DNA of 64,000 nt from Adineta vaga (GCA_021613535.1 CP075492.1:10292001-10356000), one strand, 5' to 3'; positions 6,516 through 38,668 are shown, numbered from the stretch's first letter. Notes: generated from the letters alone by a model not told the origin. Translations and numbers: made by a program.

Positions 6516-8886
6516 ATGGCAACAGGTGAACACATCTATTATTCATCGATCGATATTATATTATCATTTTGTTTATAGATACAGTAAATAAAGAGAGTCC
6601 TGAATGGGTAAAACTAGAAATTCAGGTATGAAACGATAGTTAAACATTACTTTAGATTCTATGATTTCTTTAGAAAATTCAATTGCATTTTGTATCTGCA
6701 TTACAACGCGTTGAAAGTGATATAAATAATCATTTTACTTCATTGACTACCGAATTAGAAGCGCGTGAACCAGAATCAACAAAAACTTCATCGACAAAGT
6801 CAAATGAATAATTTCTTTGTTTTTATAATTTCAATTTTGTGTTTTGTTTAGAAATTCGAAAAATGAAATAAAAGAATGTCGTGTCTTCATTCCTCGAAAC
6901 TCGATCTTGACCGATCTATTCGAAATTTCACATATTCGAAGTGTTCGAAATGTATTCGCAGCAATCTTAATCATATTAGTTATACAAGAGATACTTCATG
7001 ATATTATCAACGAAGGAAGGTAAACGAATACAATCAAATAAATCATTGGCAAATACTTGTTTTCTGTATCTTATTCAGAATTGATCTAGATTTTGATATA
7101 ATTTTTGAATGTTTTGAAAAACTACATATCGCACTTTTCGTTTGGTTAATTATGCAATTAATGACGGCAATTGTTGTTTTTATGGGATTTTATTTATGGG
7201 CATATCAACGATGCAATTTTAGGAAAAGCTTAAGTAAGAATATTCAATAGTTAGATGTAAATCGCTATTTCTGTTTTCTTATTTAGAAATGTATGATACA
7301 ATATGGTTGTCGATATATGTTCTTTATATCATGTTATTTCTGATTTTACCATGTCGTCAAATTGTGGAACATAATTTAGCAATAGCTTCGGCATTGATTA
7401 TTTTACTTGAACAGGTAAGAGTTCGTTTCTTTTTTGGAATAGATAATTCATTGAATTGAATTCTTTTAGATTCGACAATTAATGAAAACTCATTCATTCA
7501 TTCGTGAAAATATTTCTAAAAATCTTTCGTTAATCGGTTTGTTTTATCAAAAAAAAACCCAAACTTCTAAACTTGCTGTTTAAACTATGCTATTAATTCT
7601 AAATGCCTTACTGATGTATGCTTCAATGAATCTCATTGATTTTAGACGAAATAATTTCCTATGTTTTTCTCATCTGTTCTCTTTAGATTCGAAGACAAAC
7701 ACATTTGTTTGTCCAGATTATTCGAAATATTTATATTTTCTATTTGCTCCAACATTGATCTATCGTGATGAATATCCACGAAATGCAACTATTCGTTGGA
7801 ATTTTGTTGTACAAATGTTTGGTCAAGTTCTAGCATCCATGTTCTATGTTTACTGTGTTGTTGTACGATTTTGTGTTCCAACATTTTCTGATTTAAATCG
7901 AAATGAAATAACATTACCAATATTCATATCGGTTCTATTTAATTCAATTATGCCAGGAAGTCTTTTTCTTCTATTAGGTAGGATTATTCTCTATCGAATG
8001 AAATAAGAAAAAGAGATTTTGGTTTTTTTTTCATTCAACAATAGGTTTTTATGGCTTTTTACATTGTTGGTTGAATGCATTTGCTGAAATGCTTCGATTT
8101 GCAGATCGAATGTTTTATAAAGTAAGACGAAGAAATAACATGTGAAAGAAATTTTTGTTTACAAATCATATAGGATTGGTGGAATTCAACTTCATTTGCG
8201 AATTATTACCGAACATGGAATGTAGTCGTACATGATTGGCTTCATACATATGTTTATAGAGAAATTTATGTGGTAGGAAAGTATATGTTAAAATTTCGAA
8301 TTTTATTTTTTGTGTTGAATAGTTAATTGGCAAAAAGAATCGAGCATTTCCTTCGATTTGTGTAGTACTTTTATCCGCGGTTTTCCATGAATATGTCATG
8401 ATGTTTGCACTTGGTTTTTTCTATCCAGTTATGTTTCTACTTTTTGGAGTAGCAGGATGTAAGTAATGATTTTCGAATCATATAAATCCTTGACAGTTGA
8501 GTTCGTGTCCGCAATCTATTTACCTTGATAATTTATACGCTTTGCATATGTCTTGACAATCTATATTTCAATTAAATTTACTAGCTCATATAATTATTTC
8601 ACTTTTTCAGTGGCTTTTTTGTTTCTACTTCCACGAAATCCTGGTGTTGTATTTAATATACTCATCTGGCTATTTCTGTTCATTGGTGTTGGATTACAGG
8701 CATGTTTTTACTTTATGGAAGCGTATGCAAGAAGATCATGTCCAGCTAATGTAAGTTTGTTTACTCCTTGAACTGTGCATTTTATCTTCTCAATTTTAGA
8801 ATACATTTTGGGATAAAGTAATACCTCGATCATTTGTTTGTCGTGTTTCATTACCAACTGGAAATCTTTTACATATAGACTTATAA
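6516..8886 (+). CDS. SOAT1: Sterol O-acyltransferase (ACAT/SOAT), MBOAT family
   Basis: Spliced motifs [65 protein letters not shown] and catalytic SAVFHEY. Confidence 0.92.
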
Positions 8887-9002
8887 GATTCATTAGGATG
8901 TTTTTTCTAAATTTCTTTTTTTTAATAAAAAAAAAAACTACAATCAGAATCGAAAACTTGTTTCGCTATGCTTATTGAATTATTTTAGAAAGATACTTTC
9001 TT

Positions 9003-10341
9003 ATGACAACTTCAATTGATTGTCAAGAACTTCAGGTAGTCACTATCAATGTGTATATAGAAAATGTAAACAATATTTTAGAGAGAAGAAATCGAATCAT
9101 TAGAAACGATCTTTGGTTCTGCATGGTCAAAATATGATGAAAATAGTGAGACATATCGAGTTGCTCTTGAAAGAAATGTGGATCAACGAATTGAATTACA
9201 AGTAAATTCTTTTGACAATCTTCCTTAATAATGAATGATCCTATTCAGGTGACCTTTATCGATGGATATCCACTACGAAATTCGTTGAAATATTCGATTT
9301 TTGCTCCTTGGCTTAAAGGAAACAAACGACAACGATTAATGGACGAACTTAATAAAACAATTCAGTATGTAGATGATAAAATCAAGTTTCTTTCATTGAA
9401 ACAGTGCCTAAACGAAATCTAGACAAAACGTTCATGAACCTGTGATCTACTGTCTAACACAGACAATTTATGATTTTTTGGACGAAAAATTTCTATTTTT
9501 AACTGATGAACAACGTGATCAACAAACAACAGGTGGTTAAGTTATTGTCGATTTCTATTTCTCTCTTCCTAGACATAGTTTTGTTTTTCAGATGAATCAA
9601 ATGTGACCTCTATTGATAAAGTTAGTGCTGATGTAAAATATTCCAAACGATTACCTATTCCGAAATTATCACCCGAAGGTAGAACTTCATTGTTGTTCTA
9701 CTATATGATTGTTAGAGAGTTATACCTGTGTACAGAAAAATATTCCTGTCCAGAAATACTTACTGATGAACCAATGGAAGAAGATCGTGCAAGTGTTTTT
9801 CAAGCTCATTGTGCGCGTATTGAACACGAATGTCAAGTATAATCCTTGATCGTTAATAGATTTTTTGACTAAGATCATTTGATTTAGGTTCAAATGGTAT
9901 TAGATGAATTGAAGAAACATAAAAAAATTGCAACGGCAAAACATAATGTTTATGCTTATAGGTATCATTTACGATAAATAATTCGTTTTATCGAAAAATA
10001 AACTAAACAGATGATTTCATCTGTAGTTTTGAATGATATGTAAGACAATAGTATTTTGATTTAGAGTTACGGTAGGAAATGGCAAGATTCTTAATGAATG
10101 TAATGATGATGGTGAAAATCGTGCTGGTGAATGGGTTTTAGAACCACTCGTAGTACGTAACAAACTTTCTATGAATTTTCTTATTTGATTCGTATGTGTA
10201 TTGTTTTAGTTGAACAATTTAAACAATATAATGGTTGTTGTTACACGTTGGCATCGTGATTATTCGATTCATATGGGTGCCGGACGATTTACTGCTTATA
10301 AACAATGTTGTGCTGAAATAATAAAAAAATTTTTGAAATAA
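9003..10341 (+). CDS. IMPACT-like protein, divergent copy (RWD + UPF0029/ancient domain)
   Basis: EEIESLETIF and VTFIDGYP (RWD); EDRASVFQAH, KIATAKHNVYAYR, CNDDGENRAG and VVVTRW (ancient domain). Stop at 10339-10341. Confidence 0.85.
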
Positions 10342-10386
10342 AATCAAATAACTCATTTATATTTATATATTTTATCACTTTTTCAG

Positions 10387-11584
10387 ATGACTGAAGAATG
10401 GGTTCAACTTCAAGCTGATGAAATCGAAGCATTGAATAGTATTTTCGATCCAAAACAATGGAAACGTGATGAGAATGATAGTCAAAGAACATATGTATTA
10501 ACTGTCAATCATCGACCTGAAAGAGTGATTAGTTTAGAAGTCACTTTCGTTGATGGTTATCCTACTGATGAACCAATGGTTTATAATATACGGTAAGACG
10601 TTTTTATGAACAGTAAGGGTTACTGTTTTCTTCTTTGTAGAGGACCATGGTTAAGAGGTGAAGAACGACAACAATTAACAACAATTTTAGAAGATATTTA
10701 TTTGTAAGATCAAAATATACAAAAATATGTAATAAACATCTTTTATAGGAATAATATCGGCAAACCTTTAGTATTCTTATGGGCTGATGCACTTCGAGAT
10801 TTTGTTGACAAATCATCTGATAGAAATGAAAGTAAAAATTGTTTATGCAAAGACTTCGATAATTGTTTTTCTTGTGTAGCTAATACTAGTCATAAAATTG
10901 AACCAATCGGTATGAAAAATGAAATTAGTTGTTATACTTATTCTGTTCTATTCTGTTTCAATAGTGGATAAAACTTTATCAGTTGGAAAAGAAATCGTCG
11001 TTCCAACTATTCATAGTGATGAACCATTTGAAGATCGAAAAAGTGTTTTTCAAGCTCATTTAAGTACAGTACATAGTAAAGAAGAAGTTCAATTGGTTCT
11101 GAATAAATTAAAAGAAAATAAAAAGATTGCTAATGCTACACATAATATGTATGCATATAGGTAAGAGACTTTTACTCTTAGAAATTTAAATATAATTGAT
11201 ATTTTTTATAGAATTTGGGATGAAAAGCGTAATGTTCTATTAGCCGATTGTGAAGATGATGGAGAAACAGCTGCATCTAGTCGAATGCTACATTTAATGG
11301 ATGTAAATAGATTACAAAAAAACAAGTAAAAAATTATTTCTTCATAGACAATTTTTAGATTGCAGATGTGAGAAATGTGCTAGTAGTTGTTTCAAGATGG
11401 TTTGGTGGTGTTCTCTTACATAATGATCGATTCAAACATATTAATAATGCTTGTCGAACAATTTTACTCAATCATGGTTATATTAAAAAAGTAAACTGCA
11501 AGATCATTTTACAATCATCAAACGAAAGAGTGTTTTTTTTCATTTCAGACACCTGATGCCACGAAAACCAAATCGCATAAATGA
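10387..11584 (+). CDS. IMPACT: Protein IMPACT, canonical copy
   Basis: QADEIEALNSIF, DGYP, DRKSVFQAH, KIANATHNMYAYR, DCEDDGETAA, VVVSRWFGG and DRFKHINN. Stop TGA at 11582-11584. Confidence 0.93.
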
Positions 11585-11610
11585 TTAAAATATTTTTATT
11601 AAATAAAAAA

Positions 11611-11630
11611 CAACAACAACAACAACAACA
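11611..11630. repeat. (CAA)n microsatellite between convergent IMPACT and ankyrin genes
   Basis: caacaacaacaacaacaaca is read directly from the sequence. Confidence 0.8.
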
Positions 11631-11645
11631 ATAAATGAATAACAT

Positions 11646-11966
11646 CTACCTTTTTGAAAAGTCCAAAAGATATTTTATTATAAGTTGATTTGCTCCACAA
11701 TAAACAGCTATATGAATTGGTAACCATCCATATTTATTGATTGAATAAACTGATGCACCATATTCTAATAATAAATGAACAGCATCAACTTGATTACGAA
11801 GAATATAACGATGAAGTAATGGATTATTATTATCGTCGAATTTATCGAAAAGATTCATTTGTGTTAGAATAGTTTCATGTTTGAGTAATAGACAAGCTTC
11901 ATCGAGATTATTTGTATCGAGAAGATACATTAATCGATTAAAATCACATGTAGAGTTCGTCGTCAT
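11646..11966 (-). CDS. Small ankyrin-repeat protein, NRARP-like, intronless
   Basis: 106 aa with ankyrin repeats (PLLH...VHLLLEYGA; NKYGWLPIHIAVYCG...IIKYLL). Size and layout resemble NRARP. Confidence 0.7.
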   Translation of the reverse strand: MTTNSTCDFNRLMYLLDTNNLDEACLLLKHETILTQMNLFDKFDDNNNPLLHRYILRNQVDAVHLLLEYGASVYSINKYGWLPIHIAVYCGANQLIIKYLLDFSKR

Positions 11967-12760
11967 ACGACATCACGAATATGATGAACAGAAACTGTAT
12001 TGGTGATCGATTGGAATTGAAAGGAGTGCAAGAGGTCATTCATCTTTTTATTTTTCTTCTTCTTCTTCTTCGTTCGAATTCAAGGTGAAAGGAAAAAGGA
12101 AGAGAAATGTATTGAAATTTTTCTTTCTTCCTCTCTAACTGTCGATGATTCTTTTCCAATGTAAATAATGAGATCATGATGAATTAAGAAAGAGACAATT
12201 TTATTACTTTTCATGTTCATTGCTTTGATCTTTATTTTACACTATAGAACAATGAAGAAGCGGCAATGAAATCAATTGATGAGAAAATTGAGTAATAGAA
12301 ACAATAGTTTTGAAGATGAAATATTGTTTAACACTTTCAAAATAGCTTTTCTTTGTTCAAAATTCTTTTCAACTGTTAATCGACATATAATATCAACAAT
12401 TGTTCTTAACTGATTGTATCCATGGATGTTACATGTTCATAAAGCTTCTATTAACTGAGTTGAGAATGTGGATGAATGTGAGAGATAACTATGACCACGT
12501 ACCAATAAATCGATAAGCTATCATCTATTCATGCTACTTTTTCTTAAGTAAAACTATCAGCTGTTTTTATTTCTTATCTGTAATTTCAACTCACTGTCAA
12601 GGTAATGGAGAAATAACGATAACATACGTAGATGAATTGCATAATTTTAACTTAGTCATCTATGAGATTTCACAATCGAAGGTAACATAGTCAATGAAAC
12701 ATAAATAGATGCTGATAATTTTGAATAGCATTATACAAAGAACAGATCAATGTGACATTA

Positions 12761-13208
12761 ATGTCTTCCTCGTCGGAATCACTTGAAATAAGTCAAATAT
12801 CGACTAAAGATGCTATGCGTCTTTGTCGTGAAACTGAAGATATCAAAACAATTTTAGCACTAACAAATCATACAGATCCTGCTGTACGACAACGTGCATT
12901 GAAAGAAATATGTCCATGCCGTGTCAAAGATGATATTGATCAATTTTGGGAACGTGTTCTCGAAATGATTGATGATCCAGCTGATAATGTTCGAGAACAA
13001 GTGAGTGTTCTACTATTGATAGAACTAGTATGATAAATTTCATTTAAAGGTATTGCATACATTATGTGATGGTTCACCTGATCATATGGAAATGAAAGTC
13101 TTGGATGCACTTGAAATATTCAATCGAGATCGAAATCAATATATTCGACGACGAGCACATAAGGTTCTTTCTGCCTATCGACGATCAGGCAAGTGGAATG
13201 TTTTGTAA
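12761..13208 (+). CDS. Small HEAT/ARM-like repeat protein with CPCRVK and LCDGSP motifs
   Basis: Two exons (intron 13001-13049). Repeating DP.VR units: DPAVRQRALKEICPCRVK...DPADNVREQVLHTLCDGSP...IRRRAHKVLSAYRRSGKWNVL*. Confidence 0.8.
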
Positions 13209-14345: not shown

Positions 14346-15745
14346 ATGCAAGAAGAACAAAAATCAAAAACACTCGGCCGTGTACTTCTTGGTATTTGTG
14401 GAGGAATTGGTTTTGGCAAGTTGAAATAAAAACAATTAATCTTTATTTATTAATCTTATCCTACATACACAGGTCTTACTGTGTTAGCTGTACCCTTTTT
14501 AACACCAGCACTAAGACGTCAGCACTTCCATATGTTCCAGCAACAAGAGAACAATTAGATAATATATTTCATTTATTAAAACAATATTCAAATAAACAAC
14601 GTCGACATCTAATTGATCTTGGAAGTGGAGACGGAAGAATTGTTCGTAGAGAAAAATAGTTGAAATAGTTTTCTGTCAAGTGTCATTTGTTTTTTAGGTA
14701 TTTGAAGCGGTACAACAGGGTATTCCTCGTGCAACTGGAATTGAACTCAATCGTGTATTAGTGTATTATGCTCGATTGAAATCGTATCTATCAGGTCAAC
14801 GAAACATTTGCCAATTTAAACGAGCAAATCTTTGGAAAGTAAATCGAAAAACATTCATATTAATTCGATATGAAACTTTTTCACTGTTCCATTTAGTATG
14901 ATTTATCAAAATATGATACAATTGTTCTATTTGGTGTTGACACTATGGTAAGATATTTAATCTGAATTCAAGACAAAATTAATAGACATACTTCTGTCTT
15001 ATACGAACAATAGAGAAACTTAGAACAGGTGTATGTTACACTTGCATGGAAAATATAGAAAGACTACGTTTATAAAATACGAGTTAAGAAGATAAAGAAT
15101 ATTATTATTTATCATAAATTATTTCTTAAAAATAATTAGAACGTATGATAGTAAAAAAGATGTTGGAAACTTCCATATGAAGAAGAGTTATGCACTTGTG
15201 TAATTTCATCTTCATCTGAAATTAATACAGCTATGAAAAAATATGATGCTATATATCAAAGGCTTACCCAATATAGAAATCTTAATGAAACAGGTGACTC
15301 ATGCATTTATGCAGTATAAGAGAGCGATCATATTTACACTTGATATTAGAAATATAAGTCAATATGGAAGCGGATGTCTAGAGCGACAGTGGCGGCTGAT
15401 TTCTAACACAATAAACGACAGCGATGTTGACTTACATATTTATTCGTATAACCGCTATGAATATAATTTTCATTTCTTTAAGTACATGAAAAAATTGCTG
15501 AATTAGATTCAACATTTTTCAAATACAATTCAGTAAATTCAATAAACTTTGATTTTTATTTCTAGATGGAACCATTATTAAACAAACTTTCCAAAGAAAT
15601 AACTGATGAAAGTGTTGTTGTTACTTGTCGTTATCAATTTCCGATCAATTATGATCGTACCTATGGTGAAGGCATTGATGCTGTGTGGTTATATAATTCT
15701 GAAACTATACGCCAGAAAATTTCTAAAAAAAACACTTTTTCCTAG
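14346..15745 (+). CDS. FAM173-family (ATPSCKMT/ANTKMT) mitochondrial lysine methyltransferase, with a 1-nt frameshift as assembled
   Basis: TM segment, PFLTPALRR/ALPYVPAT, DLGSGDGRIV, GIELN, VLFGV, TCRYQFP and GEGIDAVWLY. Probable GC-AG first intron 14416-14472. The frame breaks at about 14519-14521. Confidence 0.88.
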
Positions 15746-15844
15746 TGTTATTTTGATCATTATAGTTACTATTTTGTCCTTTCTTTTTCAGATATAAATT
15801 TCGTTATTTATTTTAAGTGTAATATTGAGTATAAAACGACAACG

Positions 15845-18068
15845 ATGTCATCATCAAGTATTGGTGATAATGATTATTATCAACAACAAAATCCAGCATC
15901 CCAAACAAGTGTAACTGCATTTTTAGCTAAACTATGGGCACTAGTTAATGATGAATCCTGTGATGATCTGATTACTTGGGATCCGTCTGGCGCATCATTT
16001 CATGTCTATGATCAATCACGTTTTGCTCGAGAAGTTCTTCCACGTTATTTTAAACATAATAATTTTGCGTCATTTATTCGTCAATTAAATATGTATGGTT
16101 TTCGTAAAATATCAACGATTGAACATGGATCATTAAAAACTGAACGTGATGATATTGAATTTGCTCATCCAAGTTTTGTTCGTGGACATGATGAACTATT
16201 AGAATTAATCAAACGGCGTGCACCAGATAATCACCAACAAAAGATTATTATTCAACCAACAAAACCAGAAATACAATCATCATTACCGACATTATCATCA
16301 TCATCCACATTATCGTCTTCTGCAGTGACATCAACAACGACTTATGCTGATCCCAAGGTACCCCCACGTTCAGTTGAACTTTCACATGTACTTGAAGATG
16401 TCAGAAATCTACAATCGAAACAAACATCTTTAACCGATAAGTTATTTCACATGCAAGATGAAAATCAAGCTTTATGGCGTGAAATAGGCTCATTAAAACA
16501 AAAACATTCAAAACAACAGCAGATTGTTTCAAAATTAATGGAATTTCTTCTACATTTTCTTACAAATTCAACACAAACACATCGACCATCTGTTGAACAA
16601 CCATCAAGCAATTCATCTCAACAAGAACAAACACAACATCATCCTATTATTAATCAACAAATTCCAAGTAATAGTCTTAAACGTAAACCGGCTGCATTGA
16701 TGCTTAGTGAAGAACCAAAAAAACGCACGACGATGCAACAACAACAACAACAACATCTTCTATCTCAACCAATTAATATTGGACGACAACATGGTATAAC
16801 CATTAATGAATTAACCGATAATGATTCAGGTGGTTGGCTTCATACAACAGATACATCACCATTAGTTGATCTTGTTCCATCTCCACCACCAAATCAAACA
16901 TTAGATGACAATTATCAAGCATCGAAAGCTTATGAATGGGCAGTTCCATCTAATGAACTTCAAGATTCGTTAAATAAAACATTGAGAACAATTGGAAATA
17001 ATCACAATGAAAACAATAGTTTTATACCTGATTTTTTCCTATCTACGGATAATTCCAATAATACAAAATCCATTCTTGGACAAATCGATGAAGCCAGTTT
17101 AGCAGACATCAATACGGTAAACATTGATGCAGATTTTCTTCTCGATATGTTTTAATATTCAATTCTCTTAAAATAATATGCCGATATTTGTTTTCTCGTC
17201 AAATAAAATTGCGTTTTACCATTGAAATCCTATGTTATTTTACTCTAATAGTTTGATTTTCCAAAACAATAATAAATAATTTGAGTCTTTTCGAATAGAA
17301 TACAATCAGTTATCAAATTATCATTATAATTCATTGATCATCTGTACAGGTTTTCTTGAGAGATAGAAATCTAACTATATAATTACATCAATTTCATAGA
17401 TTAATTTTCTTTCTTTTTTTGTATCTTTCTAGTCTACTAGACCAAATGTTCCATTTTTGAAAGAAGAACAAATTGAATTCTCCAATACTTTCAATCCACA
17501 TGCATCTGATTCATCAACATTGAATTCATCAATTTACTCTCAGAATAAACATTCGAAATTAATTCAACCGAATAATGTACCTTTTTCTCTTGATGATATT
17601 ACTGGTGATGTCGATCATATTCAATCATCATTGGATAATATTCGTGAATTGATGTTTGATAATCTTCCCGATAATGCAACAATTGAAGATTTATTTTGCG
17701 ATGATCATGTTTTATTATCTCCACTATTAACAAATAATGGTCAAACAACAAATATCTTGACAGACACAACGGAAGAATCCAAACTTACTAATAATGATAA
17801 TAATAATTCAACTCATTTTATTTATTCAAATTCCAATGATATGAACAACACATCTCAATGTAAACAGATTATTCTACATAAAAGTGAAATTCCATTAACA
17901 AATCCTTCAACTGATATGAATAATCAATTATTGGAACAATTAATAAATGAAACAGCTAAAGTTGAAGAACAACGACAAACAATTAATCAATTAGAACGTG
18001 AAAAAATCAATTTAGAAGGTAAAATTCATCGACTTGAACAACAACAGCAAACAAATTTACGAAAATAA
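15845..18068 (+). CDS. HSF1: Heat shock transcription factor
   Basis: DNA-binding domain (AFLAKLW, LPRYFKHNNFASFIRQLNMYGFRK), HR-A/B (ENQALWREI..LKQKHSKQQQIV), one intron 17117-17432, and an HR-C-like segment DVDHIQSSLDNIRELM in exon 2. Confidence 0.95.
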
Positions 18069-18826
18069 CAATGACTCTTTCTTTCTTTCTTTCTTCAATC
18101 TTGTACAGTTTCTATATGCATGATTCTTTTTGTTTTGTTTTCTTCTTCATCTCGTCTTTATTCGCTTACTTATAAGACATGAAAACTAACCTATCTATTA
18201 CTTTTTCTCTTCGTTTATCTTTTTTTCCTCCTAGCATAGCAACGACTTTTCCATCAATTCTGTCTGTGTTTTTTTTGTGCTTTCGTCATTCGATGAAAGT
18301 TTATTATCTACCGTCAAAGCCGGTAATCACTTTTTCTGTGTTGTCGTTCTCGCTTTTTTTTTCATTAAAATAAACATAACAAAAGATTTATTAAATATTT
18401 CAAGCTCCAAAGAATTCAGATTATATGAAATTAACTTTTCCTGGTTTCAAGGACCATTCTTTTTTGTTATTGGAAAACAAAGAATCATGTTGTTACCTTG
18501 TTTTTTTGTTTTTTTCTTCTTTCAAAAAACAATATTTGTTTTCGTCGAAAAGGGTCATTGACATGTTATCGAAAATTTCAATGTTTAAAGATACACATTT
18601 ATTTTAGCATAAATTACGAAGCGTTGTTTATTCTTCTTTATACAATGAGCAAAAAAGAGTATATTTAATACATTTATATTAACAAACATATACAAAAACA
18701 GAAATAGACGATATGCTTATGCTATTTCAAATAGATAGAAGTTTTTTTTTGTCATATATCCATTTCTTTTATCTGATAAATATGACGAACAATTTCAAGA
18801 TCGAATTTGACTGAAGAGAAGTTCAT

Positions 18827-26700: not shown

Positions 26701-27537
26701 CTATCTTATTTTTGAGATGCTGTCAGATAAGAGGAAGCATAGAAGTATTCTTCAAAATATTATTATCACTGTTGGCAGTGCCGATTGGTAATACAAATTT
26801 TTTCTCGAGATTCGGTATGGTTGATGAAGATGTAGATATAATTACAATTTTTATATTTAGCATCCTTTTGTTGACTGATTTGTTCTTGTACACATGTTTC
26901 TTATTCTAAAATAGAACGATCAACATAGAAACTCGAGAGAAAACAATTTTCGAATAATTGAATTACTATTGCTTCAATACATAGACCATAATACTACAGA
27001 CTAACTTGAGTAACAATAATAATTGTATTCAACATGACCCGTAAACTATTATATGAAAGGGGTCATTAGTTATACGTTTTATCACGACGACTATAGAAAG
27101 CTGAAAACTATATCATACTATTGTATGGACTATAATTAAATCTTATTTCACTACAATGGAATAAACAAGAAGAATATAAAATATTTTGGAACTTTCCTAT
27201 TTCAATGTACTGTGTTTTATGGAACATAACGTGGGAGAGTCAGTCTATATCTTGATAAAGAATTTGTGTTTGATGAAGATAGACGAGCTTATCAGAGAAA
27301 CAAAAGATTATTTTTTATATTGATTGTACTTGTTAGTGATATCGACTTTGGTAATTTTGAATTTCACTTATGAGTAATTTTTAATATAAAATATTCACTC
27401 CATCTGTAGATTCTTTATCTGATTTGTTCGGTTATCATTTGAAGAAGAAGATTGAAAATTCTGATTCATCGGTTTTCACTTTAACGTATAAAGCAAAACA
27501 ACCAATAATTCCAGCGGTTCTTTTCGATACCACATGA
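20739..27537 (+). CDS. F-BAR-domain, STAC-like protein (multi-exon, candidate alternative first exons)
   Basis: Spliced helical N-terminus with LWESLLLETE and HNEYILEL (FCH/F-BAR-like), a coiled coil, and VDPVYETLR (recalled STAC-family motif). The probable last exon 27410-27537 requires a 1-nt correction near 26413. Confidence 0.6.
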
Positions 27538-27659
27538 CTGTTTACATATATATATATATTGAAAGTGTGTGTATGATACCATAGAAATACAATTTTGGAA
27601 TTATTGAAATGAATAGTCTATACAGATGAGTTTTTTTTATTGGATTTCTTCTTCAAATT

Positions 27660-29671
27660 ATGCGAGAATCAATAATTGAAATAATTAGTACAGTAGTAAA
27701 TTTCGAAAACAAAGCACTGAACTTCTCTTATTTTAATCTTTTTCGGAGTTAACAATACATGAGTCATTGCATTTCAGATGGTGTGAAAGCACTAGTCAAC
27801 GTCTTTATCTTGGACTTGATTTGAGTACTCAACAATTGAAAGGTATAGTAATTGACGAACAATTACAAACTATCGCTGAAGAAGCAATCAGTTTTAATGA
27901 TAAATCTTTACTTGTTCATCATGTTCAACCAAATGGTTTTATTGTTGATAAAGATGATAAACGTTGTATAACTACACCCGTATTTGTGTTTCTTGAAGCC
28001 ATTGGTAACGATAAAATGAAATTCGATTTCAAGAAGAAAAAAAAAGCAATGCTTATTATTACTTTAGATGTTTTATTTCAAAAGTTAAACGATCAAAAGA
28101 AATTCGATTTGTCTAATATTGTCGGTATATCAGGTAAATCCATAATGATATTACGTTTTAAATAGTATTCTCTTTTTTTCTTCTATCAATCTAGGTTGTG
28201 GACAACAACATGGAAGTGTTTATTGGAAAACAAAGACAGAATTAGAAAAATTAAAGAATTTCCATTTGGAAGACGGAAATCAACAGAAAACAACATCTCT
28301 TGTTGATCTTTTACAATCTTCATTTTCACGTAAGGATTGTCCAATATGGATGGATTCTTCAACAACAGAAGAATGTCAAATAATTGAGAAAACTGTTGGT
28401 AATGCTCAAAATCTATTTCAAATAACTGGCTCGAAAGCTTACGAAAGATTTACTGGTAGTCAAATCATGAAAGTTTCAAGAAAAACACCAGAAATCTATG
28501 AACAAACCGAACGCATTCAATTGATAAGCAATTTTCTTGCCACTATTTTACTTGGTGAATATGCACCTATTGATTTATCCGATGGTTCAGGAATGAATCT
28601 ACTCGATATTCGACAACATAAATGGTCAATCGATTGTTTAAATGCATGCGGAAAAGATTTAGAAAGAAAACTTTCGGAAAAACTTGTCTATCCAAGAACA
28701 CAATTGGGAACAATTGCGAATTATTTTGTTGAACGATACGGTTTGAATAAACAATGTCAAATTGTATCATGTACAGGAGATAATCCATCATCCTATTATG
28801 CATTAGCATCAGATCCCAAAACAGTTGTGATTAGTTTAGGTACGAGTGATACCGTTATGGCTTCGATTCCTGCGTCAGCTATGCCAAAAGAAGCATTCGA
28901 TGGTCATTTATTGGTTAATCCATTGACTGCTGATCCAGAAAATAATCTGTTAATGTTGTTACTTTGCTTTAAAAATGGATCACTCGTTCGAGAACGTAAG
29001 TTATAAGAGTTATGTTTTGAAAGAAATACAAAAAGGAAATATTCCGTCTGCTCAGGTGTACGTGAAGAAACAGTTACAAAAGATTGGAAAGGAATGAGTG
29101 AACTCTTAAGTAAAACATCACCAACGAACAATGGTTTTATTGGATTTTTCTATGATGATTACGAAATTTTACCACAAAATATTCAAGGAAGATTCTATTT
29201 TAATGCTGATGGTCAACAGATAGATGATTTAGAACCAGCGTGCAAAGCACGAGCTGTAGTCGAAAGTCAATTTCTCGCAAAACGATTATATCTACAACGA
29301 GCAAATGTAGATTTAAATGATCATGTAGATCGAATTGTTGTTACCGGTAAGAATCTGTCAGATCAAATAATCTTCATCATATCGAATCTTTCGTCCATTG
29401 AGGTGGTGCATCTGTGAATACTGATCTATTACAAATTTTGGCAGATATTTTTGCTAAACCAGTTTATACTGCTTTAGCACCGAATTCTGGTGCATTAGGT
29501 GGTGCTTTACGTGCAATTGATGTTATCAATCAAAAACCAAATTCAGTTTCTTCAACTGTTGAATGTCTTGTTGCTGCTAAACCACGTAGTGAATATACAG
29601 TGCTCTATGATGATATGTTTAATCGTTATGCTAAATTAGAAGATAAAATCGTTAAAGGCATACAACAGTGA
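27660..29671 (+). CDS. XYLB: Xylulokinase (FGGY carbohydrate kinase)
   Basis: LYLGLDLSTQQLK, SGCGQQHGSVYW, PIWMDSST, TGSKAYERFTGSQI, SDGSGMNL, TGDNPSS, ISLGTSDT and CFKNGSL. The start codon is uncertain (27626 or 27660). Confidence 0.93.
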
Positions 29672-29818
29672 TTAAACATTCCTCTACGTGATTTTTCTTT
29701 CTTGTTTTCTTTTTGTAGTTTATTGATATTGATTGTTTTGGACGTAGACATGATATTTATTAGTTTTGAAATAACTGATACATCTAACTTCTGATTATTT
29801 TAGATGTAAGACATATTC

Positions 29819-32198: not shown

Positions 32199-33888
32199 TC
32201 AAGATTTAATGTCTTATTTTTTAATTTCTTTTTTTGAACGATAATTCACAAATAAACATCAACGAATATTGAGATATGTAACCTACATGCAAGAGAATTT
32301 ATATGGAATAGACTTTAAAAGTTTACTAAAATCATGATGGAAAAATCTTATTAAAATATTATACCATAGAGGAAGTCTATTATTTTCGAATGAAGCTTAG
32401 GGTGGTTGTCTTCAAACCGATCGTAGGCTTTTGTAATCTGCATATATATCTTCCGCTGGGAAGTGCTTACAATAAGGTGGCATAGTAATTTGTTTCGAAA
32501 AAAGAACACCAAGCTAAACACCACGTTTTACAGTTGCCGCTGCTGCTTAAAATCAAACATATAACGTTGATGGAACATAGATTAGATAAGAAAATGAAAA
32601 AAAAATCATCCAGGGTGATCAAGTCTTCAAAATGTCTTTCCGAAAAGAATAGTCATTCACAAAGAAAGAAAATATTTTGGTCTTTGGCAATGTTTCTTAT
32701 GATATATCCGTTCAGATTATTGATAACGATGCTGATTGTTTTGTGTGCTGAGGAATTATTGTTTGACGTAAAACATTAATCTGATACGCTGTATTGACTG
32801 GCTCTAGTGAAAAAGTATCGTGAGCATGAGATTTTAGATGAATAATAAAGGAGGCGATAGGATGATCGGTAAATAAGTATACTGGCCGTTGGACTTTGCG
32901 ATGAATTAGCTACATATGTAGAATCTCTAATTTTGGCAAAAGATCAATAAATAAATAGATTGAAAAAAACATAAGTTTGCGGTAGCTTTTCGACTTAATC
33001 CAGTCCAATATCAATTGAGAAAACGGATATGATCACAAATTTCTATATATTAAATGAAAATTATTCTTCTACTTGTATTTGTATAAGATCAGAATTCATA
33101 CTTACATATAACATCGTTTCAGCTTTGAATACAGAAGATTTTCATTCTTGTATATAGTATTGTTTGCTACTCAATAATTGTGCTGCTTATGAATTTGTAT
33201 TTTTATCCGTACGTTTTGCTGAAAACTAAGTAGCATAGTAACACAGAAACGTTGTATATCAATAAGAAAATATGTTCTCTAGTCACCGTAAAACTTTTCT
33301 TGATAACATTTTAACATGTATAGTAGAAACTACAAACAAAATGTTTCGATGTAAAAAAAGTACTCTTATCAGTATCATCCGATCCCTCACTCGTATTGTT
33401 GCATGCTTACATTCAAAACAGATGGTTGAAAGAACATAATGACTTGTTTTTTATTATAGGAAAGATTTCTCGAATTCGTTCTAGAATATTTGAATAGAAA
33501 GATACTTGTCTAAATTTGTATAATCATATTTCTTTGTTTCTTTTAGTCGTTGTCTATAGATAATTTCTTTGGCGATAAGAAAAGACATTATATAGAATCT
33601 AATTCATTTTGAGATCAAACACGGTTTATTCACCTAGATTGATAGATTTCATAATGCTGATCGATTCCTAGTCTCTAGATATATACATGACGCTTGAGAT
33701 ATTTTCATGCGTAGTTATATCTTAGCATACCCTCACGTCCTATTTCTTGTGTTAATGTAAGGTGCATGCCTTATAAATACAAACAATATCTTCTTTTTTA
33801 TTTTAAATTTTTCATTGCATATCCCTTTAGTTTATTGAAAAAGGGAAACAAACAAACAACAAGAAAAACAAATGCTTAACAAATATTC

Positions 33889-35476
33889 TTATTTCTTTGT
33901 TCGCGATTTTTGACGAGCATTTTTTCCTGGCCGAGTTTGTTTTGGTTTGCCCTGAAAGAAATAATCGAATACAATAGATTGTAGAGGAAAAATAACAAAG
34001 CAAATTTCAATTTTACTTTTTTGCCTTTCTGAGCGTGAAATGATGGTCGTTGCCATTTACTGGATTTCTTATTGGATACATCTGCTGAACTGTCAGCTGT
34101 ATTCTTCTTGGAATTTTTCTTCTTACCACCGAAACCGAATTTTTGATTTTTATATTCAGTCTTACGATTTGTTTTTGACCTAAATAGAAATTGTGTAATT
34201 CTGAGTTCAAATGAATTTGTAAATAATTTTACATTCGTTTGTTATTTGTGCCATTCGTCTTGCCAAAATGACTCTTTCGATCACCAAGAGATTCTTCTAA
34301 TTCTTGCATACCACCTTGTTTACCTTTTCGAACTTTTTTCATGGTTTTAAGTAATTTTGTTTTATCTTCTTGTCGTTTTTGTAAAACTTCCTGTTGAACC
34401 TTTTTGCCATATATTCTTTGTTCACGTAATTTACGTAATTTTTCCCGTTTCTCAATATCAGATTTACGATTAACAAGATATTCTCGAATCTAAAACGAAT
34501 CTGATAAAAAATTCAAGATAATAAAGAAGATTTTACTTTTTTCATATGTTCGTCGGATTTAGCCATTTGAGCATAGTAATCTTCGGGCCGTTTTGTGGAA
34601 TATTTTTCGGCTTTCAAACGAGGAATTGCTTCGAGCACTGCTGCCTGAGCTTGACGATAACTGAAAAAAATGGGAATATATGCATGAATATGTGACTTCT
34701 TATAACTTACAAGAGCATTTCTCTTTTAAAATCATTATCAGCTAATGCATCATCTTCATTTGCAGGCAATTCAACTTCATTAACAAGTAATGGAGCATTC
34801 GAACAATCAAGTCGTTCAATCCATGGCAAATCAAGATAAATTTCAGCATATTTACCAGCAAGTGCTTCCTAGAAAGAACCTAGAATCAAATACATTTCGA
34901 TTTTGATGATAGTTTTACTTTATTATTAATCAATGGTCGTTTTGGTTTCTGTTCGATGTTCAAACCAGGTGTAAGACGACCTTCATTGAATGCTTTTTGA
35001 AGCTGAAATCATCGAAAAAAGAATAAATACGTAATACGATACTGAAAATATCTCTAGATCAAGATAATTTTTGTACAAGTACCCAAGTTATCATTTTTCA
35101 AGTACACTCATTTACAGGTCAAACTATATTGCTTGTGTCCTTTTGATATAATTATTAGCATATGTAAGATAAACAACCCAATGTTATTTTTAATCGGTTT
35201 TTGCTATTTATTTATTTGCTTAAGTGATTTTCGGTCTGTCTTATTTTTGTCTGCGTTTTCTATCGAAGTTTATATTATCAATGAAAGGCAACTTTGACGT
35301 ATCCATTACTATCGACTGGCACTCTTTTCGAGAACATTCTCAAGCAACCCATAACAACAGTTTGAGTAATAAAAAAAAGGATGATTTTATCAATCACTTA
35401 CTTCAGCATCGTCTAATTCACTATCAATATCTTCTTCCATTCCATTATCCATTTCATTATCTGATTCACTCGACAT
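33889..35476 (-). CDS. EBNA1BP2: rRNA-processing protein EBP2
   Basis: LQKAFNEGRL.PGLN, LPWIERLD, DNDFKREMLFYRQAQAAV, TKRPEDYYAQMAKSDEHM, KFGFGGKKK and RPGKNARQK. Confidence 0.93.
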
Positions 35477-35585
35477 AATAAATGAAATCTAAAAACAGAC
35501 AAACATACTGATTTACTTAATCATAAAAAAAAAGTCTCATCACAACGCTATGCACATATATATATTTACAAAAGAAAAAATATAG

Positions 35586-35722
35586 TTATTGATTCTCATT
35601 TTGTTCAATATCATCAATAATTTTATCTAAGATACTTTTAATCACTTGATTCATTAAACGTGTTACAGCATTACTATTTGTTGGTTGTTCAATCTTTTTA
35701 GTTTCCACCTCTTTTTTCACTG

Positions 35723-35756
<34 letters not shown>

Positions 35757-36499
35757 TTTAGCTTTAACAAGACTATTGTCTTGCTCTTGAAGTTTGTTCA
35801 TTAATGTTTGATAATGATTTATTAAAGAATCGATATTATTTTCAAATTCATGTTCATATATAACATTCTTTACAGCAATCATAGAATTTGTTGTATCTGT
35901 TACACACCAAATAAAACCATTTCGAGCAATACGAATACGAAAATTCTTTACAATACGATTAAAATAAGGGATTAATTGTGATCGTTGCAATTTATCACAT
36001 AATGCTAATGAACAACGGAAAATATTTCCTTGATTAATATGACCAAAATCGGACTTTTTCTTTGAACGATCAATCGATTGACAGGATAGTTCAGTTTGTA
36101 TCCATGAATCTGCACGTGCAACGCGAGCATAGACGGCACTTAAACGATTCATTGTATTACGAGCTGGTAATCGACCTTCATCGAATGATGTCGTTGGCAA
36201 TATAGCAGACTCTGCACTATTGATATCGACAAGAAATAAATCAGGTGTACGAACCAGAACAATTCCAATCACAAAATCTGATTCTTTCGGTTCATAAATA
36301 CGAGGAATGGAAATCAACGTATCTTGTGATGTTTGTTTTGAAGATAATACTGATCGTGAGACACCATGATTATGAATAATGAATAATGAAGAATCACGTT
36401 CGCCAGGTAAAAGATATGGCGATTTCTAATTAGAAAAGTTTCTATAAGAGAAAATTGACGATTAAAATTTACCGTCGTTGTTGTTGTTGATGAAGTCAT
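35586..36499 (-). CDS. EXOSC3: Exosome cap subunit RRP40-like (S1 + KH), divergent
   Basis: YEPKESDFVIGIV, FLVDINSAESAILP..SF, VYARV and NGFIW resemble Rrp40. One short 5' intron. PolyQ-containing C-terminal extension. Confidence 0.75.
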
Positions 36500-36590
36500 G
36501 AGAATAAAATATTCAAATCTACGAGTGTATATTAAGATCGATTCAATTTAGATAAGAAATTTATCTAAAAGTAAAACAAATAAAAATCTT

Positions 36591-38668
36591 TTATTTCATT
36601 TGTTGTAATTTCTTAATTTTCATCGGTAATAAATCAATCATTTCTTTACAAATCGGATATTCTTGTTCAATATGTTCGCAAGCTTCTGGATGTTTCTCAA
36701 CATAATCGACAATGATTTTATATTGATTCAAACTTAATTGCAGATTTTCCTGACGATTGTCAATAAATTTCGAATAAAATCTGGCGATGTAAAAATGTGC
36801 TAATAGAATCGGTCGAATATATTCATCTGCATAAGTTTCCGGTTTTTGTTTTGTTTTTTTATCATTCATTGTCGACAGGAAACGTTCAAATGTTTCAATA
36901 CCAAGTTTAGTTAAATGAGTAATTTTATCTGCAGTTTTCGAAGAATCTATCTCATGCTTTTGTTCAATTTTCAAATCAAGTAAGACAGAATAACATTCAC
37001 CTAATTCAAATAATAATTGACGCATTATATACAAATAATGTTCTTCACTAATCTCCTTGGATAATGAAGATAATAGGTCAATTCGACGTTTATGCATTTT
37101 ACATTTTCGATCAAGATTTGATTCGAAAAAGACTAGTTTTGCAAATAATTGACTCGTATCTTGACATAATTCAACATGATCAGTAACAAATCCATCGAGA
37201 ACATAGTAAGATTTCGATGAATTGATTTTATCCATAGCAAAAAGAAATACTTGACGAGCTTGATCATAATCAAGAACATAGGCACAGGTGATGGGTGGTG
37301 TTGGAAGTGAAAGTTGAAATTGAAATTTTGGAATTGAAGAAGAACGAACGATTTCATTCGGATTAACATCGCGATCAGCCGCTTGAAGAAGACGATCGGA
37401 TGAATCACCTATGATGATCAAAATTATATTTTCATTAACAATCTGTTTATTCACTATCGTGAAAAAGTACATATAGATTGGATTTACTATTTTATCGACG
37501 ATAGAAACAACGTTCATCTATGAATTTTTATAAGTATATTTTCTCAGCACTCAGATTATCTAATCTTCCATGTTGTGGTCAGTTGAGGGAAAGTTTTTGT
37601 ATCTTCATCGTGCTGATAAAATACTTGAATAGAGATTCGATCCTTTCTTTTTCAAGTATTCTACCCATTCAATCAATCTTACTTAATAGATTAACTGCAT
37701 ATTTAACCCAACAACGTTTGAAACTTGCTATTCGTTCAGTTAATTTTTCTTGTTCAATTGTATCAGATCGAACGTTTTCTAACATTTTATCAGCACACAT
37801 CAAACAATGTCTCGATGTCGCATAATCATGATCTGTCATATAATATTGAGATAATGTTGCACAATTGGTTGCCCAATCCAATGGATCGAAATGTTTACTA
37901 TGATTGGAATTGAACATAGATAATTGACGTTCAAGTGTTAAACGACAATAATTAGCAGATTGATTTTTCTCATTTAATTTTCCATAGATTTGTGCAAGGT
38001 AAAATAATGTATGCGTATAGATTTGTTCAAATTCTTGACGACGATCAATAGATTGAAGTGATGTATCAATATGAATGATTTCTCGTAAAAGATAGGGTTC
38101 TATAGATGATATTTTATTGTAAAGATCTTCAGCTTGCTTAGCTATTTCAATGGCATCATTGTACTGTTCATATGAAGTTCGGATAAGAATTAATTGATTC
38201 AATAGATTTAGACTAAGAGAACAAAGTAATGGATGAGTAAGAGCTTGCTCAATAGAGATTAAAATTTGACGTAAACGAGATTCACCTTCACTCTTTTCTT
38301 CAGTATCACTGTATATTGTGCCAATATGATAATCAAGTAATAAATGAATTAAAGAACGATGTTTTTTGGAAACTAAAATATTTCAAATAGAATTTTTATA
38401 CATCAATTTCTCATTTACCTGATGTTTCTTTCAGTTGTTCGTCAGATTTGATCATAATAAATTTTTGTTTTTCATTTTCTTCAATTAAATCTAAATTTTC
38501 GAATTCTTTTTCTAGAACATCTGATTGTTCATCGACATTTTCTTGATATAATTCTTCAAATATTTTCCTAGCTTCATATTTCGATTTGTATGGTTCAGTT
38601 TCTGGATCATTCAAACTCTGTACATAACATTTATCAATCGCAGTTGAATATCGTTCGAGAAATTTCAT
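36591..38668 (-). CDS. KIFBP: KIF-binding protein (KBP)
   Basis: DPETEPYKSKYEAR, THTLFYLAQIY, DPLDWATNCATLSQYY, DGFVTDHVE and CKMHKRRIDLL. Confidence 0.93.

Follow-up and report, generated by a model that had tools for sequence, protein, structure and literature searches.

Gene runs and their intercistronic gaps

The window analysed here, a 64,000-nt stretch of the Adineta vaga genome (GCA_021613535.1 CP075492.1:10292001-10356000; coordinates were counted from its start and taken from the sequence, with reading frames verified), contains four runs of same-strand genes, in which seven junctions separate a stop codon from the next ATG by only 45-147 nt (Table 1). Pfam matches were obtained for HSF, FGGY (XYLB), Pkinase (ULK3), KBP_C (KIFBP) and UPF0029 (IMPACT), while the names MBOAT, IMPACT, ATPSCKMT and Ebp2 were taken from orthologous loci, which is also where the Ebp2 Pfam match was found. 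The main exon of RRP40 (279 aa) is 100% identical to the A. vaga protein I4U23_014038, whose 288 aa equal the length of the two-exon RRP40 model.

Table 1. Positions of genes, gaps and signals, counted from the window start (scores of acceptors are PWM scores)
Feature	Position	Strand	Details
MBOAT ('SOAT')>IMPACTa gap	8887..9002	+	116 nt; MBOAT stop 8884-8886; IMPACTa ATG 9003
MBOAT>IMPACTa signals	AATAAA 8924-8929; acceptor AG 8987-8988	+	AG 14 nt 5' of ATG; score 9.2
IMPACTa>IMPACTb gap	10342..10386	+	45 nt; IMPACTa stop 10339-10341; IMPACTb ATG 10387
IMPACTa>IMPACTb signals	AATAAA 10337-10342; AG 10385-10386	+	AATAAA overlaps stop; tttttcag adjoins ATG; score 10.0, shuffle P 0.036
ATPSCKMT ('FAM173')>HSF gap	15746..15844	+	99 nt; ATPSCKMT stop 15743-15745; HSF ATG 15845
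HSF acceptor	AG 15790-15791	+	score 10.2
'STAC-like'>XYLB gap	27538..27659	+	122 nt; stop 27535-27537; XYLB ATG 27660
XYLB acceptor	AG 27624-27625	+	followed by 17-codon uORF; weak, score 4.1, shuffle P 0.71
XYLB>ULK3 gap	29672..29818	+	147 nt; XYLB stop 29669-29671; ULK3 ATG 29819
ULK3 acceptor	AG 29802-29803	+	conserved ATG-stop mini-uORF ATGTAA 29804-29809 directly 3'
EBP2	33792..35476	-	stop 33891-33889; 399-nt first intron 35003-35401; RNA joints
EBP2 3' end	AATAAA 33836-33831; poly(A) site ~33792-33794	-	adapter-plus-T10 loose end, RNA run X6
RRP40>EBP2 gap	35477..35585	-	109 nt; RRP40 stop 35588-35586; EBP2 ATG 35476
EBP2 acceptor	AG 35490-35489	-	
RRP40	35586..36499	-	288 aa; one 47-nt intron 36426-36472; RNA joints
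cis donor GT	35644..35645	-	last coding exon of RRP40, 19 codons before stop, phase 0
KIFBP>RRP40 gap	36500..36590	-	91 nt; KIFBP stop 36593-36591; RRP40 ATG 36499
KIFBP>RRP40 signal	AATAAA 36595-36590	-	overlaps KIFBP stop
RRP40 acceptor A	AG 36566-36565	-	score 11.5
RRP40 acceptor B	AG 36520-36519	-	score 3.6; named in the sequence-only reading
KIFBP coding region	36591..38668	-	introns 37407-37680, 38374-38420; RNA joints; KBP_C Pfam
BolA-like gene	39080..39565	+	ORF; opposite strand, within KIFBP 5' intron
KIFBP non-coding leader exon	39768..39837	-	joined to ATG across 1099-nt intron 38669-39767
Conserved non-coding block	39850..40005	-	~150 nt; between DCP1-like stop (40047-40045) and KIFBP leader exon

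An earlier reading of this DNA from the sequence alone had described the runs as operon-like, and all seven of its gap lengths (116, 45, 99, 88-122, 147, 91 and 109 nt) were reproduced from the sequence, the range at the fourth junction reflecting a distance of 88 nt if the gap is measured to an upstream ATG at 27626. Such short intercistronic distances are those of an SL-resolved (SL, spliced leader) metazoan operon, and the orthologous junctions of other bdelloids are shorter still (19-48 nt). The YAG said to precede each next ATG is present in all seven gaps, weakly so at 27625; the 'STAC-like'>XYLB junction, whose upstream gene model is weak, appears the least secure of the set. In the KIFBP-RRP40 gap, acceptor A is stronger and better conserved than acceptor B. 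The claimed U-richness also held up, the sense strand of the gaps carrying 348 T vs 220 A (binomial P = 9e-8).

Against a PWM trained on 60 first-pass predicted introns (median of the training set, 8.1), the gap acceptors scored 3.6-11.5. Compared with dinucleotide shuffles of their own gaps, single acceptors stood out to a modest degree only (P 0.013-0.71; Fisher combined P = 0.002), and most of the gap signal lies in composition and conservation, not solely in the AG. It could be argued that some gaps are merely introns of single genes, or that the neighbouring frames are not separate genes, and indeed the ab initio finder had split KIFBP at its 274-nt intron, which gave rise to a false 87-nt gap, while the 3' end of the 'STAC-like' gene is weakly supported. 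Nevertheless, every gap has an in-frame stop before it and an ATG after it, the flanking genes come from unrelated families and are annotated separately in four other bdelloid genomes, and conservation extends as far as the stop in the C-termini and sets in at the ATG in the N-termini. At six of the seven junctions such an artefact is for the most part refuted, and we give it very little credence as an account of the whole.

Conservation of the runs in other bdelloids

A. steineri, Rotaria socialis and 10 environmental bdelloid contigs all preserve the order KBP>RRP40>EBP2. The KBP-RRP40 gaps of these relatives measure 19 nt (TAAaatctcgtttttttttcag|ATG), 24, 36 and 41 nt, and their RRP40-EBP2 gaps 32 and 48 nt; in these short gaps the AATAAA of the upstream gene shares bases with its stop codon, and next come a pyrimidine tract and AG|ATG. 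Acceptor A is retained from Adineta to Rotaria, and the EBP2 acceptor ATTTTAG|AT is invariant in all eight aligned bdelloid sequences. The adjacency of MBOAT and IMPACT is kept in Rotaria magnacalcarata, where the IMPACT ortholog has ttcag|ATG, as at IMPACTb; that of ATPSCKMT and HSF, together with ttcag|ATAT..TATTTATTTTAAG, in A. ricciae and Rotaria; and that of XYLB and ULK3, with the acceptor, in A. steineri (ttttcag|ATGTGA). In the HSF 5' UTR, conservation begins at the acceptor and continues downstream. Altogether, order, strand and acceptors of the four gene sets are kept across bdelloid families (Adineta and/or Rotaria), the order apparently better than that of the surroundings, and the gaps are too short and too conserved for ordinary intergenic DNA.

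Such acceptors, however, also occur away from tandem short gaps: they stand equally before the isolated genes at 54621, 46176 and 1871, and they are kept in the C6 ohnologs of HSF and ULK3, where ATPSCKMT and XYLB, respectively, are absent. Because genes without a close upstream neighbour carry acceptors too, these sites speak for splicing at the 5' end rather than for operons as such. This favours a rival reading, in which the genome is compact and every gene is driven by a promoter of its own, placed either in the gap or within the gene before it; the acceptors would then serve SL trans-splicing of monocistronic transcripts with short outrons, and read-through RNA would be a by-product of weak termination. 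The RRP40-EBP2 gap contains conserved TA-rich motifs (TGTAAATATA-like) that could be a TATA element. On the other hand, the 19-48-nt gaps of the relatives consist of a pyrimidine tract and AG only, leaving no room for a promoter, and the genes have stayed in this order since Adineta and Rotaria diverged. On this and the RNA evidence below, we judge separate promoters throughout to be unlikely, albeit deserving of serious attention.

The 5' end of KIFBP and its nested neighbour

The KIFBP ATG lies directly 3' of an acceptor (AG 38670-38669) that is cis-spliced to a non-coding leader exon 1.1 kb upstream, which was placed by means of an RNA loose end at 38670 matching 39770-39799. The leader exon in turn begins at a conserved acceptor, ttcattcag (AG 39839-39838, score 10.8), and a contig of RNA run X3 ends at 39833. 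The BolA-like gene was considered as a divergent neighbour of KIFBP and rejected as such, as it is nested in the 1099-nt KIFBP 5' intron, a position that is the same in A. steineri and Rotaria. Of the divergent pairs in the sequence-only reading, the 794-bp one fits the gene models and the 411-bp KIFBP/BolA one falls away. The conserved block upstream of the leader exon, when aligned between A. vaga, A. steineri and Rotaria socialis, is identical in about 77% of its aligned columns, and it may represent a promoter or part of a 3' UTR.

RNA across KIFBP>RRP40>EBP2

RNA contigs from four runs were placed on KIFBP>RRP40>EBP2, one of the four gene runs. Two of them, X3 record 7 (2643 nt) and X1 record 2 (1635 nt), from two samples of one study, cross the KIFBP-RRP40 gap (36500-36590) with all KIFBP and RRP40 introns removed. 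The gap is transcribed in otherwise fully spliced RNA, which runs counter to a separate promoter for each gene, with the proviso that a contig spanning two genes is no proof of a single transcript. DNA carry-over is ruled out because none of the four RNA runs has any depth in the intergenic bins 33400-33599 and 38800-38999. In line with separate promoters, the X6 contigs break within the same gap, ending at 36526 and 36560, so that positions 36527-36559 are without X6 coverage. Of these, the KIFBP contig stops at 36560, with 6 letters left unaligned, 30 nt past the AATAAA (36595-36590) that overlaps the stop, and the KIFBP 3' end is probably located at ~36560-36565, i.e., ~0-5 nt from acceptor A and ~40 nt from acceptor B, at the sole junction for which such an estimate was made.

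At the next junction, a joint between 35488 and 35646 in X3 skips 157 nt with CT..AC borders (GT..AG on the minus strand) and 30 letters on its short side, thereby connecting the RRP40 donor at 35645 with the acceptor of EBP2 and keeping the ATG of EBP2 in frame; run X3 is the only one to show it. The EBP2 and KIFBP acceptors are real 3' splice sites in use. The X3 joint comes from a precursor linking an RRP40 exon to EBP2, and it requires either that RRP40 and EBP2 share a precursor or that transcription starts within RRP40; in both cases transcription crosses the RRP40-EBP2 gap, contrary to what separate promoters would lead one to expect. The sequence-only reading had noted mostly no convincing GT donor for the gap acceptors, which has to be amended at 35489, where the donor 157 nt upstream is used in one RNA run. 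Contig depth in X6 is similar for KIFBP (22.9) and RRP40 (26.3), while EBP2 contigs are ~10-16x deeper than those of RRP40 and KIFBP in all runs; contig depth being a poor measure, this hints at an extra EBP2 promoter, again as separate promoters would have it.

Both acceptors with a seen partner pair in cis (KIFBP with the leader exon, EBP2 with donor 35645), which raises the thought that all of them are ordinary 3' splice sites, paired with upstream non-coding exons or with donors of the upstream gene (conjoined or read-through transcripts), the SL not being involved. No SL was seen at 35488, 36518 or 36564 in the assembled contigs of the four RNA runs; because assembled contigs tend to clip 23-nt tips, this is weak negative evidence. 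Several observations are at odds with splicing in cis only: the KIFBP leader exon itself starts at another conserved acceptor, for which no donor was seen; the EBP2 cis product, found in one run only, would encode an RRP40-EBP2 fusion; its donor GT sits in a valine codon and is missing in at least one relative; the 45-nt and 19-nt AG|ATG gaps offer no candidate 5' exon beyond the upstream gene; and SL machinery is abundant in the genome. We therefore hold an exclusively cis origin to be improbable.

The spliced leader in the genome

A search with the canonical leader only revealed 42 copies of the SL exon TGCTTATTACAACTTACCAAGAG in the A. vaga genome, all identical, and none of the reversed control. 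The copy examined is followed directly by a GTAAAT donor, that is, it has the leader exon and splice donor of an SL RNA gene. The presence of SL machinery in this bdelloid, in line with the trans-splicing that the sequence-only reading took as established for bdelloids, is thereby confirmed, and TGCTTATTACAACTTACCAAGAG matches the published rotifer SL (PMC3795323).

Discussion

Taken together, the evidence tilts somewhat towards the view that the runs are transcription units resembling operons, of the tunicate type with a single leader. The proposal of polycistronic units resolved by 3' cleavage and SL trans-splicing has gained support in its first part, through the KIFBP-RRP40 gap in spliced contigs and the RRP40-EBP2 cis joint; as to its second part, the SL itself was not seen in the contigs. 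In our judgement the runs are operon-like and co-transcribed in part; we infer their resolution by the SL, which would be the usual partner of the acceptors, and each run would have one promoter. Under such a scheme, RNA polymerase II would continue beyond the upstream gene's poly(A) signal, which in many cases shares bases with the stop codon of that gene. The upstream mRNA would be freed by cleavage and polyadenylation some tens of nucleotides further on, and the downstream cistron would be saved by splicing of the 23-nt SL of rotifers, as a rule, to the pyrimidine-tract AG that lies just 5' of its ATG. Judging from sequence and synteny, the other three runs may behave as KIFBP>RRP40>EBP2 does.

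A stronger version, to which we assign slightly less than an even chance, holds that bdelloids possess true tunicate-type SL-resolved operons dating at least to the Adineta-Rotaria ancestor, with AAUAAA overlapping the stop codon and the 3' end at or beside the trans-splice acceptor, and that (DCP1>)KIFBP>RRP40>EBP2 forms one unit with an antisense BolA in its first intron. No report of rotifer operons was found in the literature searched, and if this version were true, one more phylum would join the few animal groups with operons.

The operons of Ciona intestinalis and Oikopleura dioica are SL-resolved and use a single SL. The bdelloid runs are like them in having what would be one leader for all genes, unrelated genes on the same strand, an acceptor that probably lies at or beside the upstream 3' end, an AATAAA in or ending the upstream coding region, gaps of 19-48 nt in the relatives, and AG|ATG at IMPACTb in A. 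vaga. Unlike in these tunicates, the stop-to-ATG gaps of A. vaga are mostly 90-150 nt, and SL addition is what we infer here. Ciona operons have no intercistronic DNA, and those of Oikopleura have 23-30 nt (PMC1488885).

With chaetognaths, A. vaga shares its place as a spiralian/gnathiferan-side lineage with trans-splicing. In Paraspadella gotoi, 18% of genes lie in operons, called by gaps <250 bp plus SL evidence and having no operon-specific leader (PMC12460157). The chaetognath case has genome-wide SL read support, unlike that of A. vaga, which is built on one locus of RNA contigs and on synteny.

The ~100-nt spacing, the U-rich intercistronic sequence and the housekeeping gene content are, in turn, reminiscent of Caenorhabditis elegans, in which such distances are also ~100 nt (PMC1488885, PMC7986045). 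Unlike that nematode, A. vaga has 42 of 42 SL exon copies identical, as found with the canonical SL. C. elegans operons are resolved by SL2, a minority being of an SL1 type without spacer, and hybrid operons have internal promoters; no second, operon-specific leader is known in rotifers. EBP2, a downstream gene with apparent extra expression, resembles the members of such hybrid operons and probably has a promoter of its own as well.

Finally, the splicing of a donor in the last RRP40 exon to the first EBP2 acceptor, in frame, recalls the conjoined or read-through genes of vertebrates. What sets the bdelloid case apart is that conservation has preserved the acceptor as the place where the downstream mRNA begins, that the gaps are tiny and the organism SL-bearing, and that the chimera occurs in one run only.

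Probable operon-like transcription of KIFBP, RRP40 and EBP2

The best-supported reading of the tight same-strand gene runs is operon-like polycistronic transcription, with rescue of the downstream cistrons, as we infer, by the spliced leader (SL). Transcription would pass across neighbouring same-strand cistrons, the RNA would be cleaved just past an AAUAAA embedded in the upstream stop codon, and the SL would be joined at the acceptor, thereby rescuing the downstream cistron. The junctions were re-read from the sequence and the reading frames checked with a small exon-chaining script, which gave the same figures for all seven stop-to-start gaps as the sequence-only reading.

Gaps (stop to ATG), with scores of their acceptors, and other features of the gene runs
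Feature	Position	Length (nt)	Strand	Acceptor score
MBOAT-type ('SOAT') to IMPACTa gap		116	plus	9.2
IMPACTa to IMPACTb gap		45	plus	10.0
ATPSCKMT ('FAM173') to HSF gap		99	plus	10.2
'STAC-like' to XYLB gap		122, or 88 to upstream ATG	plus	4.1
XYLB to ULK3 gap		147	plus	7.4
KIFBP to RRP40 gap	36500-36590	91	minus	3.6
RRP40 to EBP2 gap		109	minus	7.7
KIFBP leader exon (loose end matched to genome)	39768-39837	70	minus	10.8
KIFBP 5' intron	38669-39767	1099	minus	
BolA gene	39080-39565		plus	
Non-coding block upstream of KIFBP	39850-40005	~150	minus	
EBP2 first intron	35003-35401	399	minus	

The gene identities are supported by Pfam matches of single exons (HSF_DNA-bind, FGGY_N, Pkinase, KBP_C and UPF0029) and by annotated orthologous loci (MBOAT, RWD+Impact_N, ATPSCKMT_N, Ebp2, BolA and DCP1), the protein searches having been made with exons one by one and not with spliced protein models. 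Over its main exon, RRP40 matches 'hypothetical protein I4U23_014038 [Adineta vaga]' with 100% identity.

KIFBP-RRP40 is the strongest operon case. Four RNA sequencing runs from three studies (X1, X3, X5 and X6), all as assembled contigs, were aligned to 33400-39399, the entire minus-strand run from KIFBP through RRP40 to EBP2. The contigs behave as RNA: introns of 47-399 nt with GT..AG ends are missing, one contig has an adapter and T10 attached at the poly(A) site of EBP2 (~33792), and intergenic bins over the same span have zero depth. Single contigs (X3 record 7, 2643 nt; X1 record 2, 1635 nt) bridge KIFBP and RRP40; the two introns of the KIFBP coding region, its 5' intron and the RRP40 intron are gone from them, and the gap between the genes is kept. 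X1 also includes a contig with an unspliced KIFBP intron (37379-37710), its depth roughly one sixth that of the mature RNA, so that precursors were sampled. In X6, from a different study, the contigs end at 36526 on the RRP40 side and at 36560, with 6 unaligned letters, on the KIFBP side. Because an AATAAA (36595-36590) overlaps the KIFBP stop codon, a KIFBP 3' end at 36560-36565 would be canonically spaced, and this putative end lies within 0-5 nt of an acceptor AG at 36566-36565.

In the EBP2 contig of X3, positions 35488 and 35646 are joined across GT..AG ends. The EBP2 acceptor is thus cis-spliced to a phase-0 donor that lies 19 codons short of the RRP40 stop, and the frame of the EBP2 ATG is kept. 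An RNA with an RRP40 exon therefore continues into EBP2. It also means that the EBP2 acceptor is not unpaired in cis in X3, pairing with a cis donor being literally an outcome that the sequence-only reading had named as refuting. The read-through splice (35488/35646, minus strand) was seen in X3 only; its product would encode RRP40 minus the last 19 residues, four linker residues and the full EBP2.

The depth of the EBP2 contigs exceeds that of the KIFBP and RRP40 contigs by a factor of 10-16 in 4/4 runs; contig depth being a poor measure, this is no more than a hint of additional transcription of EBP2's own. The depths of KIFBP and RRP40 are alike in X6 (22.9 and 26.3). EBP2 is probably a hybrid case with a promoter of its own.

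The polycistronic part of the original model is partly supported by the bridged KIFBP-RRP40 gap (X1 and X3) and by the link from the RRP40 exon to EBP2; its SL part found no counterpart, no SL-like loose end being present on the contigs of the four runs over 33400-39399, and such contigs show presence, not absence. Assemblers typically clip a 23-nt dead-end branch when a precursor path competes. Absence from the contigs is not counted as a refutation of SL addition, and the SL is kept as the inferred partner at the tested acceptors. Two loose ends in X5 (35439 and 36366), considered as SL candidates, are not SL and are taken as divergence of 'organism B'. Metagenome matches to RRP40 carry no SL, all of them being genomic DNA and not transcripts.

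Splice acceptors and the spliced leader

Rotifers have been known since 2005 to trans-splice an SL, and the machinery that the sequence-only reading had taken as established for bdelloids has its counterpart in this genome. The published rotifer SL is GGCTTATTACAACTTACCAAGAG (PMC3795323, Table 1), and reads bearing it would be recognisable by ...CTTACCAAGAG. The SL exon TGCTTATTACAACTTACCAAGAG was found 42 times in the genome (six contigs, 100.8 Mb; reversed control, 0), with GTAAAT directly after it in the copy that was read, as expected for an SL RNA gene. None of the 42 copies lies on the chromosome of the window.

The window DNA has about 30% G+C, and the first-pass predicted introns are mostly ~45-70 nt long (most RNA-confirmed joints, 47-65 nt). 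The gaps are U-rich, as had been claimed (sense-strand T 348 vs A 220, P = 9e-8), and every one of the seven holds a YAG after a pyrimidine tract. Acceptors were scored with a matrix trained on 60 introns predicted in the first gene-finder pass, whose median score is 8.1; in the KIFBP-RRP40 gap, the acceptor at 36566-36565 (11.5) scores better than the one proposed before (AG at 36520-36519). Once the dinucleotide content of the gaps is taken into account, single sites stand out only modestly (P 0.013-0.71; combined by Fisher's method, P = 0.002), so that an AG alone is weak evidence; the weight is carried by gap composition and conservation, not by the AG. Our own ab initio exon-chaining finder merged the whole window into two 'genes', and a version with short introns only split real genes at long introns; it was therefore used just for local frames and acceptor scores.

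The main rival is a compact genome, in which independent promoters would be combined with short SL-spliced outrons, and it may well hold for the 90-150-nt gaps of A. vaga itself. The homoeologous block on another contig (C6) is without IMPACT, ATPSCKMT and XYLB, and no second copy of RRP40 or XYLB was found in the genome, which limits the ohnolog comparison to HSF, ULK3 and MBOAT. There the HSF copy keeps its acceptor (aatttcag|atATG), as does the ULK3 copy (tttattttag|ATGTAAGA), and good acceptors also precede window genes with no near upstream neighbour (ATGs 54621, 46176 and 1871). An acceptor before an ATG therefore marks 5'-end splicing generally, not operon membership, and very plausibly many genes here are trans-spliced to the SL. 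What argues for operon status is the shortness and conservation of the gaps, together with the RNA bridging. Some tandem neighbours in relatives (HEAT and ATPSCKMT) stand 500-700 nt apart, and thus not all same-strand pairs are tight.

Conservation of the gaps in other bdelloids

The order and strand of KBP (the KIFBP ortholog), RRP40 and EBP2, with BolA antisense upstream, are kept in A. steineri, Rotaria socialis and ten environmental bdelloid DNA contigs. Among environmental contigs the KBP-RRP40 gap measures 19, 24, 36, 41 and 74 nt, and one Logan contig has 28 nt; in A. vaga it is 91 nt, in A. steineri 165 nt and in Rotaria 204 nt. The KBP stop codon and an AATAAA overlap in most bdelloids compared. 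The 19-nt gap reads TAAaatctcgtttttttttcag|ATG, and in such a sequence, a pyrimidine tract with an AG abutting the ATG, neither a promoter nor a separate 3' end can fit, as in the tunicate operon arrangement (PMC1488885). The RRP40-EBP2 gaps measure 32, 48 and 90-124 nt among eight aligned sequences, with ATTTTAG|AT before EBP2 invariant (8/8), and 119 and 134 nt as annotated in A. steineri and Rotaria socialis, respectively.

The three plus-strand runs are good operon candidates on the evidence of synteny. XYLB and ULK3 adjoin in A. steineri (~167 nt, acceptor conserved), and ATPSCKMT and HSF in A. ricciae (111 nt) and Rotaria magnacalcarata (150 nt), where conservation of the HSF 5' UTR begins at the acceptor. 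MBOAT and IMPACT adjoin in Rotaria (206 nt, ttcag|ATG); since the Rotaria IMPACT is similar to IMPACTb in the sequence that follows the start codon (MSESWVQIQAEEVEA), a tandem duplication on the Adineta side may have added IMPACTa.

In full-text literature searches we found no description of rotifer operons: a table of 2008 enters rotifers as 'ND' (PMC2481426), and a paper of 2025 names them in a general sentence on trans-splicing and operonic transcription, without data (PMC12460157). Should the runs prove to be operons, rotifers would be added to the nematodes, tunicates, flatworms and chaetognaths, and the question whether operons arise wherever a spliced leader evolves would become sharper. 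On the practical side, gene predictors fuse or truncate genes in such runs, and expression studies of A. vaga (desiccation, DNA-repair genes) assume one promoter per gene.

The 5' end of KIFBP

The KIFBP contig departs from the genome 2 nt before the ATG. Its 30 printed loose letters match 39770-39799 exactly, and the 64-letter loose end in X3 puts the contig end at ~39833, 4 nt short of the leader-exon acceptor; KIFBP therefore has a leader exon, which begins at this strong acceptor, 207 nt past the stop of a DCP1-like gene. The supposed '411-bp divergent pair' is instead a nested pair, BolA lying inside the first intron of KIFBP. A. steineri and Rotaria have BolA in the same place, antisense and flanked by the DCP1-like gene and KBP.

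The non-coding block between the DCP1-like stop and the leader exon has ~77% of aligned columns identical among A. vaga, A. steineri and Rotaria socialis, at first sight at least the RRP40 protein identity between these genera (66-73%). It has no Rfam match; its possible identities are a promoter for the KIFBP unit, a 3'-UTR element of DCP1 and an RNA.

Further features of the runs

The first intron of EBP2 is unusually long. A stretch GATAYGTCAAAGTTG...ATGATAA in it is common to A. vaga and an environmental Adineta contig (L007, 1206-1515), and the intron has G+C-rich stretches in other bdelloids. It may host a snoRNA or other small RNA; Rfam gave no match at gathering score for this intron or over the window.

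The 436-aa open frame of HSF is the first exon only, because the annotated proteins of its orthologs and of the C6 ohnolog have 611-675 aa; further conserved exons lie at ~17583-18091 (HSF region 15845-18100, plus strand). No A. vaga protein for this HSF copy was among the matches of 240-763 aa, and the annotation may have merged it with the gene upstream into a longer fusion.

In one assembly of A. steineri, a tandem duplication (L029, reverse-complemented, 2300-4730) runs from the 3' part of XYLB to the 5' part of ULK3 and takes in the entire 167-nt gap and its acceptor. Directly after the ULK3 acceptor, the window has a minimal uORF of ATG and stop (ATGTAA, 29804-29809), found also in the C6 ohnolog (reverse-complemented G000:C6:5565000-5594999, ~28044) and, as ATGTGA, in A. 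steineri (L030, reverse-complemented, ~1507); this conservation suggests a 'start-stop' element of translational control in the ULK3 leader.
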